Part shown: in pieces, positions 18,765 through 34,343 of the stretch
How positions within the stretch are numbered: the stretch's first letter is position 1
Layout of the letters: the number at the start of each line of letters is the position of its first letter
Source of the DNA: Octopus sinensis
Lineage: Eukaryota
Assembly (NCBI RefSeq): GCF_006345805.1
Contig: NC_043008.1
Coordinates: forward strand, 77,190,001 to 77,254,000
Reading direction: 5' to 3'
DNA length: 64,000 nt
Program-made: the position numbers and the translations under genes
Notes under the pieces: generated by a model
What the model saw: the letters and a program-made list of their open reading frames with translations, nothing else
The model's database searches: none
What the model was told of the DNA's origin: nothing

Positions 18765-19100
18765 AAATATAGTCCGTTGTCTTCTGCTGAACCAGGATCA
18801 TCCCTTGACCCTAGAGTCACAGCAGGTCCTCATCTCATGGAGAGTACACGGCGTGAAATGTGTGCAGGACCTAGCAACGCTATTTTCTGAAGTTCTCCCA
18901 CGTTAACACTGCAAGGTATTTTGTTGAGCTGCTTATGAAGGCCCATTTTTATTAGCTCTAACGCTCCAATCACCACTGGTGCTGTGCTGCTTTTCATTCC
19001 CCAAATCTTGGTTACTTCTAGGTTTTTGTACTTAAATAACGGCTCAACTTCTTTAATGGACACATTTCTCTCTGATGGTACTGTCACATCTATCATTAAG
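18765..19100 (-). mobile_element. 5'-truncated R4/Dong-like element (RLE C-terminus and 3' UTR)
   Basis: MIDVTVPSERNVSIKE..KYK.LE..VVIGAL..LQKIALLG.AHI.RRVL; 5' end abuts the (ATT)n tract. Confidence 0.85.
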
Positions 19101-19101
19101 A

Positions 19102-19293
19102 ATTATTATTATTATTATTATTATTATTGTTATTATTATTATCATCAGCAGCAGCATCGTCGTCGTCGTCGTCGTCGTCGTCGTCGTCGTCGTCATCATC
19201 ATCATCATCATCATCATCATCATCATCATCATCATCATCATCATTATTATTATTATTATTATTATTATTATTATTATTATTATTATTATTATT
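19102..19293. repeat. Compound trinucleotide microsatellite (ATT)n-(CAG)-(CGT)n-(CAT)n-(ATT)n
   Basis: Read directly from the sequence. Confidence 0.95.
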
Positions 19294-29938: not shown

Positions 29939-32900
29939 TCTTTCCAGACCAAATCAGCTCGCATTGCGCGAGCACTGATAGCGGGAAAGGGGAGTGGCAT
30001 ACAGTGCCACCGAAAAAGAAAAGAAAAAAGAAACAAAAAGAAACACATGACACACTGGGGAGGTGCGAACAATTAGTGCTTCCCAACATCAACAGCAACA
30101 ACATGCACCCACAACAACAACAATTAACAACACCTTCTCTACCAGTACTGCTACACACACCAACACACACAGACACCACCAACACCGTTACAACAATAAA
30201 CACGAACAATGAACAGTTAGTAACATACCTGAAAAATAACACAGACACAAAAATGTCAGATTTTATTATACCCACACACAACACACTACCAGCACACATA
30301 CTTACATTTAAAATCACACAAGACAATTATAATAAAATCAAGGAGAAATTCCCAAACGATGTTGGGTCGCTAGGGAGAAATTTCTCCAAAAATCTCTACA
30401 AAAACCTGGTGGAAAAACCCGTCCAAAAGCACAAGGGAGCCACCCCACCAAACAACAACAGTAAGTAGAGCCATTTTCTCCTTAACCTTTTAAAACATGG
30501 CAAAACTCAGAATCGGTAGCATAAATGTAAGAGGCCTCGGGTCACCTTGGAAACAGGGTCACCTGTTAAACGACCTGAGGTCTCATAGAGTTGATGTAGC
30601 AGCCATTAGTGAAACCAGGCTCTCTAACCCGTAAGAACTCGCGGCCCTTTTCAGCGGATACGAGATTTTTCTATCTTCGTGTCGGCCGGGAGCGGCCGGT
30701 GGTGGTACGGCGGTTTTGTTTCGGAAGGGCCTGGATTTGAAAATAAGGACAGTCTTCCTGGATCCGGAAGGTAAGTTGGTGGTCCTTGACGTAGACGGTA
30801 GTGACGGTGGTGCTTTCAGACTGCTGGCTGCCTACACTCCGAAAGGAGCAGGGCAGTCCGATTATTTCAAGCGTCTGGAAGTTTTCTTGGGGACGTCACG
30901 CACTCTAGTGCTAGTTGGGGATTGGAACGCTGTCTTAGATGAACGTTTCGATCGGGTGGGCACGGGAGCATCTAATAGGAGAGGTGGGTGCAAGTGCCTC
31001 GCCAACCTGCTCAGGCGCTTTCAGTTGTCCGATAGGTTTCGACTAGACAACCCGAATGTGCCAATGTGGACTTGGACTAATTGCATCGGGTCGTTTAGAT
31101 CGTACTTAGATAGAGTCTTCTGTAGGCCAGCGGATAAGGACAGCATAGGGTGTCCACAATTCCACCTAGTCGACTACACGGACCACAAATTCATGATCTG
31201 TACGGTCGACTTAGATAGGCTACATAGACAGGGTCCCGGCTACTGGAAGCTGAACGCGTCGTTAACGGCGTGCAAAGCCTACAGAGACCGGATTAGTTTA
31301 TTAGTTAAACGGGCGCTCACGGGGGCAATCATCAACAACAACTGGTGGTTTGCTCTCAAGAGAGCAATTAGAGCAGAGTCGATTAGGTTTAGTAAGGCTC
31401 TAGCTGTAGAACGTAGAAAAACAGCGGGATTTAGTTAGAAAACTAGACGAGGCTCTTGAGACAGGCATCGCAACCGACGTGTTGGCGTCTAGGTTGGCCC
31501 TCGACCAACACTTTGACGCCAAACACGAAGGCTGCGTTGTCAGAGCTAAGGCGCGTTCGCTAAGCGGGAAGGGAACTAAGGCCGTTCGATGGGCCCGCTT
31601 GGTGGAGTCGAAACGTGGCAACAAAGCGACTATTCGGTCTTTGGTGGACCAGAATGGGTGCGAGGTTTCCGAACCAAAGCAGATGTGTGCGGTGTTTCAG
31701 CGGTACTTTGCTCAACTGTTTGGGGTGAACGGTGGGACGGACAACGAGACAGACTTCGGTGTGTACCTGGACGGCTTACCGCAACTCTCGGACAGCGAGG
31801 CGGAGTGCTGCGAAAGACAGATATCTGCCTGGGAAGTGGAGGAAGCAATGAAGAGCTGCACGAGAGGCAGATCGCCGGGCTTGGATGGTCTGCCCTACAA
31901 GCTTTACACTTCAATGCCAGACTTGTTTGCGGGCCTCTTGGCAAACGTCTACTGCAAATGGCAACAAAACGGGAGAATTCCTGCTTTTGTTTGTCGAGGG
32001 GTGGTGGCTTTGCTGAGAAAGGACCCAAACAAGGGGGACGTTATTGGGAACTTTAGGCCCATCATTTTGTTCAATGCAGAGTTGAAGATTTTGGCCAAGG
32101 TGCTAGCCAAGAGATTGGCGCTTGTCGTGGAGAAGCTGATTGACAAGGCGCAGACATGCACCGTGCCGACCAGGTCGATACACGATAATCTCCATCTGAT
32201 GCGCTACATCATAGAGAGGGTGGGTAACGACACTGGCGCGGGTGGGGCTTTGATCAATTTAGATCAGAGTAAAGCCTTCGATAGGGTCGACCATCGATAC
32301 CTGGCAGCTTTTCTCAAGGCAGCCCGTTTCGGTCCAGTCTTCCGCGGGTGGATCGCTGCTTTGTACAGCAACATCTGCTCGGTGATACGGGTGAACGGTT
32401 ACCTTTCGCAGCCGCTTGACATCTCGCGTTCAGTTCGCCAAGGATGTCCTCTCTCCTCCCTCTTGTACGTATTGACTCTCGAGCCATTACTGCGCAAGTT
32501 GGAGGCTTTGAGGGGTATCCCGCGTGATCTAGGAGGTGGAAACAGCGTGTCTGCCTATGCCGACGACGTCACCGTGATGGTGTCGAGCCAAAGGCACATT
32601 GACCTGATTGGCGAGACACTAAGCGAGTACGAAGTGGTGACAGGGGTAAAGATTAATGCGGAAAAGTCCGTGGGCTTGCAACTGGGCACCTGGAGAGTCA
32701 AGTCCATGCCGTCCAACAGTGTTGTAGGGCGCTGGACAGACGGACCCGTTAAACTGCTCGGGGTCTGGTTTGGTCCAGACCTCCAGGTGGATAAAAACTG
32801 GGAAGAGGTGACAAACAGGGTGGCCAATCTCACCCAGAAATGGGCCGAGAGGAAGCTGTCCCTGAAAGGTCGAGCGGAGGTGGCGAATGCGTACATCGCA

Positions 32901-34194
32901 TCCATCATCTATTACCGATTGACCGTCGTCCCTTGTCCCGATCGCTGGTTGGCCAAGCTGGTGCGCTTGCTCTTCGACTTCTTGTGGAAGGGTCAGGTAC
33001 CACTGGTCAGGCGACCCATCTGCTGTCAACGGCCGCTGAACGGAGGCCTTGGCATGCCGTGGTTACTGATGCACAGACATGCGCTCAGGCTACGGCATCT
33101 CATGTATTTCGTAAACGGTGAACAGGTGTGGTCATCTTTTGTCAGACAAAAGATGACCACACCTGTTCCGCAGCTCGTCTCTTTGACAGAGTTGCAGTCT
33201 TGGATCAAATGCCGACCGAGAAAGGGCGCTTAGCACCTCGAGTGCCGTCAAGCTCTCTCTGCCCTCCACCAGGCGGGCAATGCGATCGGTAGTGGTTCCA
33301 CTCTAGCGTTCTATAGCGGTTTAGTGGAAGAAAAGTGCGGCGACGTTCTCGGGGAAACTCTAGGCGTTGACGATAACGAGATAAACAGTCTGTTCGGGAG
33401 AACTTTCGGGCCGGGGCCAATGGATAATTTCCAAAGGTCCCACGCCTGGAAGTGCTACCGAGGGGCTCTGCCTGTTCGGGATAAACTCTATCGGCAGGGA
33501 AGTGCCGTCAGACGGGCCTGCCCGAGGTGCGCCCAGGACGACGAAACCGTTCTGCACGCACTCGTCCAGTGCCCGAGTATTGCTGAACTATGGGTTTATG
33601 TCGAACAGCTACTGTCACGTTTAGGCTATCAGCTGAATCCATAGTGAGGATTGCCCTGCCGACCTCCTTTAACCGGGAGGGCAAGGCAGTATTCCTTTGC
33701 CTAGTGGCTGTAGCGATATAGGTGATATGGTGGACCCGTTTGAAAGGGCTATGATTAGACACTTTCCTCTTTGGCCAAGGCCTCATCAACTTTTTCAAGT
33801 TTCACTTGAAAAGGAAGATGAGAGTAGAGAGGGAAGTGATGTATGGTAGCAAGTTTATTGAAAGGTTGGTGAATGTCGCAAGAATGTGGTATGAACGGAC
33901 CAATTCTGGGGATACACCTGTGAAAATTAAAAGGAAATATAAAAGGAGAAAGGGGCTCTCTACCCCGCTTTTGACCAGGCTACCGTGGCTTTTATATGTT
34001 TTTCCACGAGTAACCTTTCGAAGCGCCTCCCCCTATTGGGAGTTTTAATTGTTACTTACATTTCGTTGTTATCTTGCTTTTATACACGGACTTTTTCAAA
34101 CGGACAAAACCCTTTGTAACTTTCGTCGTCCTCTGTTTTGTCCCTTTATGTTTTAATTGATTTTTGTTAGCCCTTGAGGCCAATAAACGAACGA
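29939..34194 (+). mobile_element. Tx1-clade (L1 group) non-LTR retrotransposon, 5'-truncated within ORF1
   Basis: ORF1 C-terminal part to 30468, ORF2 from ATG 30497, 3' UTR ending CCCTTGAGGCCAATAAACGAACGA followed by (ATT)n; (ATT)n also upstream. Confidence 0.9.
30497..33920 (+). pseudogene. Tx1-like ORF2: APE endonuclease, reverse transcriptase and zinc finger, disrupted
   Basis: MAKLRIGSINVRGL..ISETR, premature TAA at 30632, GDWN, SYLDRV, TDH, WKLN; frameshift near 31430; SPGLDG, FRPI.L.N, LDQSKAFDRVDH, QGCPLS, AYADD; stop at 33231; CPRC..ETVLHALVQC. Confidence 0.93.
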
Positions 34195-34343
34195 ATTATT
34201 ATTATTATTATTATTATTATTATTATTATTATTATTATTATTATTAATATTATTATTATTATTATAAAGTAGTAGTAGTAGAAGTAGTAGTAGTAATAGT
34301 AGTAGTAGTAGTAGTAGTGGTAGTAGTAGTAGTTGTAGTAGTA
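34195..34343. repeat. (ATT)n followed by (AGT)n microsatellite
   Basis: Read directly from the sequence. Confidence 0.95.

Follow-up and report, generated by a model that had tools for sequence, protein, structure and literature searches.

Dong elements insert in (TAA)n, including in snails (DongBg of Biomphalaria; PMC3812793), and families of the Tx1 group are found in (TC)n for Kibi, (TTC)n for Koshi, (TTCC)n and (TTTC)n, a family being considered as microsatellite-specific when over 20% of its copies have the target repeat on the two flanks (PMC4494074). Dong-R4 and L1-Tx1 elements are both abundant and recently active in Octopus vulgaris (PMC13282606), and Dong-R4 is reported more generally as abundant and active in octopus (PMC13282606, PMC8967140, PMC9115989). 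We analyzed a 64-kb stretch of the Octopus sinensis genome (contig NC_043008.1, positions 77,190,001 to 77,254,000, hereafter the window, in whose own coordinates all positions are given) where, from 18.8 to 34.3 kb, no fewer than nine retroelement pieces are placed next to one another, none of them interrupting the body of another. This layout differs from that of an ordinary transposon nest, where elements would interrupt one another. The pieces belong to Dong/R4-like and L1/Tx1-like long interspersed nuclear elements (LINEs) as well as to a short interspersed nuclear element (SINE), and most of their ends adjoin (ATT)n tracts. Our preferred interpretation, to which we give a probability of about 0.6, is that the locus is a graveyard of copies of retrotransposons lacking long terminal repeats (non-LTR) accumulated in one (ATT)n.(AAT)n microsatellite, which the two LINE lineages and the SINE would have entered in fixed antiparallel orientations.

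The Dong elements of Bombyx mori, Anopheles and Biomphalaria resemble the first group in carrying a reverse transcriptase (RT) followed by a CCHC motif and a restriction-like endonuclease (RLE), with no apurinic/apyrimidinic endonuclease (APE), in reading in the sense direction into TAA and in having the repeat at 5'-truncation points too (PMC3812793). The copies of the window differ from them in being 32-50% identical to each other, with one copy in the opposite orientation and devoid of tail and one 5' end located at (TTC)n. Kibi, Koshi and the crocodilian Tx1 elements share with the second group APE, RT and zf-RVT domains along with an ORF1 that bears a CCHC knuckle, a single orientation in the microsatellite and head-to-tail chains (PMC4494074), but the repeat is here (ATT)n instead of (TC)n, (TTC)n, (TTCC)n or (TTTC)n, the host belongs to the cephalopods and not to the vertebrates, and the copies are few. 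A sequence-only reading of this DNA that preceded our analysis had named TAA repeats as the target of Dong and TC/TTC repeats as that of Kibi and Koshi, with which the literature agrees (PMC3812793, PMC4494074).

The arrangement of two groups in one repeat recalls the TRAS and SART families (R1 clade) of the Bombyx mori (TTAGG)n telomere, which are also two LINE families inserted in one tandem repeat in opposite orientations and forming mixed arrays (PMC10088271); both are, however, APE-type, telomeric members of one clade, whereas RLE and APE types are here associated in an interstitial trinucleotide microsatellite. In pairs of the stringent type, such as RTE/Bov-B with their SINEs and UnaL2, LINE and SINE have a common 3' end and repeat tail, and tail repeats influence the priming site (PMC6007223), but these pairs are dispersed rather than confined to a microsatellite, and the similarity between SINE and LINE tails is modest here. 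The literature that we searched, which was incomplete and did not cover Repbase reports, described neither an ATT/TAA-associated family of Tx1-like type nor an RLE/APE pairing on one microsatellite. The Dong-in-TAA half of our observations is already known, and the L1/Tx1-type family tied to ATT looks undescribed. In the 28S rDNA, R1 and R2 are APE-type and RLE-type LINEs that became independently specialised on the same multicopy target, but at two different unique sites of a gene instead of on the two strands of one simple repeat.

Organization of the locus

We located ATT tracts with TRF and a regular-expression scan for perfect (ATT)n of at least four units over the whole 64 kb, and placed the element pieces by tblastn, first with the window's own open reading frames (ORFs) and then with 256 database relatives. 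The window has ~37% GC and is extremely microsatellite-rich (238 TRF rows); the closest relatives of its transposon proteins are from Argonauta hians, Octopus bimaculoides and Acanthosepion pharaonis. The pieces follow one another in the order R4-e(+), R4-a(-), R4-b(-), U1(+), SINE(+), Tx-A(+), Tx-B(+), R4-c(-), R4-d(-), Tx-C(+), with the following intervening repeats (aa, amino acids; UTR, untranslated region):

16809-18791, plus strand: R4-e, RLE-type LINE from the RT to near the C-terminus; aa identity of 41% with the R4-d RT and of 36% with the R4-c C-terminus (tblastn); range extended to 18791 using 120 relatives
18829-19099, minus strand: R4-a, C-terminal fragment of an RLE-type LINE (tblastn 18836-19099); 5'-truncation point 2 bp from (ATT)13
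19102-19293, plus strand: compound microsatellite (ATT)13-(CAG)3-(TCG)12-(TCA)17-(ATT)17, with ATT at 19102-19142 and 19243-19293; the right ATT part, read on the minus strand, forms the (TAA)n tail of R4-b
19294-20838, minus strand: R4-b, RLE-type LINE with partial RT and CCHC/RLE C-terminus (tblastn 19456-20838), the CCHC being of zf-RVT type; 5'-truncated, ATT on both sides
20839-20903, plus strand: (TAT)22, between the R4-b 5' end and the U1 left end
20904-22469, plus strand: U1, degenerate 5' part of a Tx1-like element with an ORF1 remnant and a Q/H-rich linker; left end adjoins (TAT)22
22470-22619, plus strand: (TTA)50, the longest tract; U1 end on its left, SINE 5' end on its right
22620-22858, plus strand: SINE-like element of ~225 bp; 5' end adjoins (TTA)50, Tx-like 3' end ..CTTGTGCCTATAGTTGAAAAG, then a ATTATTATCATTA tail
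23371-24712, plus strand: Tx-A, Tx1-like with an internal deletion, RT and zf-RVT pieces (tblastn 23535-24351); 3' UTR ends CCTTGTGGCCAATAAAGAAAAC
24713-24722, plus strand: (ATT)3+A, tail of Tx-A and simultaneously 5' flank of Tx-B
24723-25240, plus strand: Tx-B, strongly 5'-truncated and internally deleted Tx1-like element (tblastn 24686-24993); ends CCTTGTGACCAATAAAGAAATC
25241-25258, plus strand: (ATT)6, common to the Tx-B 3' end (+) and, as (AAT)6, to the R4-c 3' end (-), tail-to-tail
25259-26341, minus strand: R4-c, 5'-truncated RLE-type LINE (tblastn 25479-26288) with a 217-bp 3' UTR
26342-26464, plus strand: (ATT)41, serving R4-d as its (TAA)n tail and bordering R4-c on the 5' side
26465-29676, minus strand: R4-d, longest RLE-type copy, with N-terminal ORF, RT and C-terminus (tblastn 26568-29599); several stops
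29677-29859, plus strand: (TTC)61, at the R4-d 5' end; sole long junction repeat other than ATT
29866-29939, plus strand: (TAT)25, 5' flank of Tx-C
29940-34194, plus strand: Tx-C, longest Tx1-like copy, with ORF1 end and linker (tblastn 30004-33641); 3' UTR ends CCTTGAGGCCAATAAACGAACGA
34195-34265, plus strand: (ATT)23, tail of Tx-C; next come (AGT)25 at 34268-34344 and unique sequence

All the ATT tracts listed by the sequence-only reading were recovered at their places by TRF and the regular-expression scan. The one at 19102-19293, which it had taken for a simple ATT tract, indeed has ATT at both ends but is not pure, being compounded with CAG, TCG and TCA. Fifteen of the 17 perfect (ATT)n tracts of at least four units present in the window sit within 19102-34263. 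In terms of density, there are 12 ATT tracts in the 15.5-kb span versus five short ones in the remaining 48.5 kb. The regular-expression scan found no (AAT)n of at least four units on the plus strand anywhere in the 64 kb, all tracts being ATT on that strand.

We considered a terminus as near ATT when it was within 4 bp of an ATT tract, which is the case of 4.3% of the positions of the span. This applied to 12 of the 16 element termini, with a binomial P of ~6e-14, which should be read as an order of magnitude only because element boundaries were partly set by eye, and to 14/16 if the imperfect tail of the SINE and the ATC-ATT end of the tract 26342-26464 are counted. Among 5' ends, seven of eight adjoin ATT (P ~2e-9, again as an order of magnitude). 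The proposal that almost every boundary is made of ATT stands for these 12-14 termini but not for the 5' end of R4-d, which adjoins (TTC)61. ATT had also been claimed to lie at 5'-truncation points, and we recovered this arrangement for R4-a (19099/19102), R4-b (20838/20839), R4-c (26341/26342), Tx-B (24722/24723) and Tx-C (29939/29940). For the Dong-like copies, the three intact 3' ends all read into (AAT/TAA)n and three of the four 5' ends adjoin the repeat.

The 3' ends of Tx-A, Tx-B and Tx-C share ..CCTTGNGNCCAATAAA.., followed by (ATT)3, (ATT)6 and (ATT)23 in constant phase, and their common 20-mer, CCTTG[T/A]G[G/A]CCAATAAA..AA., gave three matches against 0.01 expected. The three 3' UTRs are homologous yet diverged, with coding parts 72-78% identical to Tx-C; this divergence of the 3' UTRs indicates independent insertions rather than recent duplicates. 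In JGI contig L003, 28 or more ATT units come after the same 3' end, and in ENA contig L028 this end continues into ATTATTA (two units) up to the contig end; ATT is present on the 3' side in all five copies with a visible end (three in the window, L003 and L028). Among plus-strand elements, U1 is preceded on its 5' side by (TAT)22, the SINE by (TTA)50, Tx-B by (ATT)3 and Tx-C by (TAT)25. In Logan contig L029, an ORF1-bearing relative, TATTATTATTATT is located ~500 bp upstream of ORF1, a position at which a 5' UTR would be expected to start and which is probably the 5' end of a full-length relative. ATT is found on the 5' side in 4/4 copies of the window and in L029, in a sample of ~6 copies coming mostly from one locus. 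The junction phase, N followed by ATTATT, is constant in all six Tx/SINE 3' ends, which shows that the RNA of the element itself ends in (AUU)n; on its own, this would reduce ATT to a tail. The Tx-type copies form an L1/Tx1-like family carrying an ATT tail.

The 3' end of the SINE could be aligned with the Tx 3' ends over ~19/29 positions. The SINE, on which a search for box-like motifs was also run, had no call by ARAGORN and no match in Rfam. Metagenome contigs were scanned for the Tx 3'-end motif, ATT not being required, and this gave 23 matches, all bacterial-looking and attributable to chance, none of them followed by ATT; the collection, in which contig L003 is absent, is a weak negative control only.

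RLE-type and APE-type copies

From their domains and motifs, the minus-strand copies are most probably LINEs of the R2 superfamily, Dong/R4-like, and the Dong/R4 name fits the repeat annotation of cephalopods (PMC8967140, PMC13282606, PMC9115989). RVT_1 was recovered in R4-d (Pfam, E=9e-24) and RT pieces also in R4-b and R4-e, while Pfam searches for APE (Exo_endo_phos) gave no match in any R4-d ORF or in the minus-strand set. R4-c has an intact 270-aa C-terminal ORF with CCHC, RHD and RPD..D..K..KY motifs. In an alignment of this ORF with relatives from many animals (11 sequences), C-x2-C-x8-H-x4-C, RHD and NRPDI..IDM.VP..K..KYKDLE are conserved. The R4 C-terminus had no match in the PDB as a single sequence, and a profile was needed to match it to the CCHC and KPD..DVTV..K..KYK restriction-like endonuclease region of R2 (E=4e-4).

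The low protein identity between the RLE copies (32-50% by tblastn) suggests that they are either separate families or very old. The CCHC and RLE region of R4-c (25476-26288) is 50-60% identical to proteins of Oculina, Acropora, Asterias, Clytia and Penaeus (relatives P0137-P0256), so that its identity to coral, starfish, hydrozoan and shrimp proteins exceeds that to the RLE copies located 1-7 kb away; this cross-phylum likeness suggests either horizontal transfer or lineages that are ancient and have co-existed. The R4-like relatives on L033 and L036 have no readable 3' tail.

It had been claimed that all four R4/Dong-like copies of the span are on the minus strand. This holds for these four (tblastn), but a fifth one, R4-e, is on the plus strand at the left edge of the span. 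R4-e and R4-a are tail-to-tail at a junction where the 3' ends of both were lost, and R4-e may be viewed either as an exception or as a rearranged remnant. We rejected twin priming and inverted duplication as origins of this pair, which has no similarity at the DNA level and whose sense/antisense order does not suit twin priming. At the other end of the minus-strand set, R4-d has within its ORF an in-frame (GAA)48 at 27369-27512, translated as E/R/K runs, and its 5' junction repeat is a near-identical (GAA)61; the repeat possibly expanded both inside the coding LINE and at its 5' junction. A Koshi-like reading of (TTC)61 was rejected, this repeat adjoining the 5' end of an RLE element and resembling the internal (GAA)48 of that same element.

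The plus-strand pieces appear to be L1/Tx1-like, the Tx1 label resting on cephalopod RepeatMasker usage (PMC8967140, PMC13282606). In Pfam searches, Exo_endo_phos and zf-RVT domains were recovered only in the plus-strand set, whereas RVT_1 was present in both sets. Tx-C carries APE (Exo_endo_phos) at 30497-31414, RT (RVT_1) at 31413-33233 and zf-RVT at 33324-33644, with a frameshift near 31414 and further breaks. Compared with solved structures, the Tx-C RT is nearer to human L1 ORF2p (2e-42) than to R2 (2e-23), whereas the R4-d RT is nearer to R2 proteins (1.5e-17) than to L1 ORF2p (5e-7), in agreement, together with the RLE and APE domains, with the two unrelated LINE groups recognized from the sequence alone. 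The claim that the Tx1-like pieces of the span are all on the plus strand was confirmed as well (tblastn 23535-24351, 24686-24993 and 30004-33641). Tx-C was rejected as a full-length element, its relatives carrying ORF1 ~0.9 kb upstream of the Tx-C start (29940); this position is thus a truncation point adjoining (TAT)25. ORF1 with a CCHC knuckle is present in the relatives L029 and Argonauta L001 and missing from the truncated Tx-C.

U1 has a decayed CX2CX4(G)X4C knuckle at ~22300-22345 and matched in tblastn the ORF1 region of L029 (3e-6, 9e-6) and the other ORF1-like ORF of the window (7e-7). It is probably the 5' half of Tx-A, whose left limit is uncertain and lies possibly as far as 22859. 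At the DNA level, U1 and the segment 22859-23370 gave only low-complexity matches to Tx relatives. This segment of ~500 bp, from the SINE tail to the first Tx-A coding similarity, contains (CAG)18(CAA)15, which recalls the linker between ORF1 and ORF2 in Tx relatives. The 10-bp tail of Tx-A is precisely where Tx-B lies. Outside the span, a second L1/Tx1-type ORF1 remnant is located at 51604-52374 (-), with a 215-aa ORF sharing 29% aa identity with the Argonauta ORF1 and no ATT tract nearby; not every Tx1-type remnant of the window thus obeys the ATT/plus rule.

Proposed origin and competing explanations

In the interpretation that we favor, two LINE lineages would have used the same repeat. 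The first, of the R2 superfamily and Dong/R4-like, with RT followed by CCHC and RLE, has a sense strand ending in (TAA)n; the second, L1/Tx1-like, with the order ORF1-APE-RT-zf-RVT, has a sense strand ending in ..GCCCTTGTGGCCAATAAAGAAATC-(ATT)n and is accompanied by the SINE, whose 3' end is similar. During target-primed reverse transcription, the nicked strand supplies the primer and would have to pair with the 3' end of the RNA. For a Dong-like copy, the plus strand (ATT)n would be nicked and its 3' end would pair with the (UAA)n of the RNA, whereas for a Tx-like copy or the SINE, the minus strand (AAT)n would be nicked and would pair with (AUU)n. The opposite polarity of the two groups would then follow from their tails being complementary versions of one repeat, as seen most clearly at the (ATT)6 of 25241-25258. 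Each insertion would split a tract and add a newly copied tail, and the number of tracts would thus rise with insertions, landing sites being kept or gained and elements piling up. That two endonucleases converged on the repeat, nicking opposite strands and producing a self-extending array, as the sequence-only reading proposed, is an inference from ~6 copies. The tract density fits such a positive feedback, and equally a single large ancestral tract.

The presence of ATT at the 5' ends of U1, the SINE, Tx-B, Tx-C and L029 and the fact that plus-strand elements are never found inside other elements speak for a landing preference. We are moderately inclined to accept a real preference of Tx-type elements for ATT tracts as landing sites, and rate a specificity at the level of the endonuclease clearly lower.

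Several observations weigh against our interpretation. R4-e straddles the left edge of the span without a TAA/ATT tail, the 3' UTR of R4-a is cut short without a clean TAA tail, and the R4-d 5' end is at (GAA)61, that is (TTC)61 on the plus strand, and not at ATT. Clean ATT is absent from both sides of a second copy of the SINE at 62582-62800 (70% identity). U1 and Tx-A resemble a single element interrupted by (TTA)50 and the SINE, in which case the SINE and the longest ATT tract would have entered a site that was not ATT. All copies of the locus are degenerate, and the sample is small and mostly from one locus (~6 informative copies, four of them here); the 5'-flank evidence, of about five junctions with four in this ATT-rich locus, is not independent of that richness. 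Finally, Argonauta relatives (55-64% aa identity) keep the GGCTAATAAAGAAATC end but follow it with (TATC)5 or with an AT-rich non-repeat, and relatives at 53-54% aa identity have no microsatellite, though they are also head to tail. In Argonauta L034 (4884-11483), two copies lie head to tail ~5.5 kb apart, the first ending in ..GGCTAATAAAGAAATC then (TATC)5. L031 and L032 carry more distant Tx1 relatives without microsatellite tails, the two head-to-tail copies of L031 (348-13712) having a 7547-bp period without an intervening microsatellite, and L002, L004 and L030 stop before the element end. Such distant relatives with (TATC)n or with no repeat indicate that the association with ATT is confined to a narrow lineage.

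A softer form of preference is conceivable, though we hold it only tentatively; as a variant of the favored explanation, it overlaps with it. The APE would nick AT-rich DNA broadly, as L1 endonucleases do, and the pairing and priming of the (AUU)n RNA would bias insertion sites toward (AAT)n, the choice being guided by RNA. The end of the UTR is indeed constant while the repeat unit changes among close relatives, from (ATT)n here to (TATC)n in Argonauta L034, and a change of tail redirecting priming explains this more easily than a re-engineering of the endonuclease. Work on RTE-type retroposons also ties 3' microsatellite repeats to the choice of the cleavage or priming site (PMC6007223), and the pairing between RNA and target may carry much of the site choice. 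The target choice of site-specific LINEs is, however, attributed mainly to the endonuclease (PMC4494074), and the data of the window do not separate the contributions of protein and RNA.

Somewhat less likely in our view is a targeting by the Dong-like elements only, the Tx1-like LINE and the SINE inserting nearly anywhere with a templated (ATT)n tail. Dong-like insertions landing in those tails would automatically be antiparallel to the Tx copy, making a convergence of endonucleases unnecessary. The TAA specificity of Dong is established (PMC3812793), and the (ATT)6 common to Tx-B and R4-c and the (ATT)41 next to R4-c and R4-d are as expected of Dong in a Tx tail. The constant phase of the six Tx/SINE 3' ends is that of a tail encoded by or copied from RNA, the older SINE copy at 62.6 kb is outside an ATT tract, and the SINE with (TTA)50 seemingly lies within a Tx element and not in a microsatellite that was already there. 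Against this, the definable plus-strand 5' ends (4/4) and that of L029 adjoin ATT where random insertion predicts ~4% per junction, Tx-B is located exactly in the 10-bp tail of Tx-A, and Tx-type elements never interrupt the body of another element here.

We regard as very improbable that the locus is not an insertion record but results from recombination between dispersed ATT tracts or from an assembly mis-join at shared ATT tails, since, although some rearrangement did occur at the R4-e/R4-a junction, which lost both 3' ends, and the window contains a very young or artefactual duplication (perfect 1072-nt inverted repeats, 39745-43178), the orientation is consistent for nine pieces, the junction phases are exact, the tracts (10-150 bp) are short for long-read mis-joins, and the same 3' end with ATT is present in independent assemblies (L003 and L028).

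Extending the antiparallel insertion that we favor beyond this locus, it is possible, but in our opinion doubtful, that in octopods an L1/Tx1 lineage of APE type, together with its SINE, and a Dong lineage of RLE type each became specialised on the same microsatellite on opposite strands, feeding each other's landing sites through the new ATT/TAA tail left by every insertion and seeding or lengthening ATT microsatellites genome-wide. Such a mutual feeding, if true, would help to explain why cephalopod genomes are rich in trinucleotide repeats, and paired targeting could be one source of the birth and growth of their microsatellites. RLE and APE elements in opposite orientations on one microsatellite would provide a second, cross-class example of the TRAS/SART type. 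For programmable insertion of DNA without breaks, site-specific LINEs are the natural models, and the Tx1 group is known for rapid changes of target. A Tx1-like family associated with (ATT)n, if confirmed, would add a new target to the Tx1 list, and its close relatives, which keep the 3' UTR end while having (TATC)n or lacking a repeat, would offer a compact system in which to ask which of the two, endonuclease or RNA tail, reads the target. Should target specificity be limited to the Dong half, the locus would be an ordinary case of the known behavior of Dong on LINE/SINE tails.

Neighboring features of the window

An interstitial telomere-type repeat, (CCCTAA)5-6, is located at 34642-34675, ~300 bp to the right of the right flank of the array. 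Further right, nested inverted repeats occupy 38681-43178. Their arms at 39745-40816 and 42107-43178 (1072 nt) are 100% complementary and each contains the same 114-aa ORF, at 40248-40592 (-) and 42331-42675 (+), and the arms at 38898-39477 and 40855-41434 (580 nt) are 97% complementary; the structure could be an inverted duplication of very recent date or else a palindrome created by the assembly. On visual inspection of the translations only, putative remnants of mariner-like transposases were recognized at 50704-51234 (+) and 63631-63981 (-).

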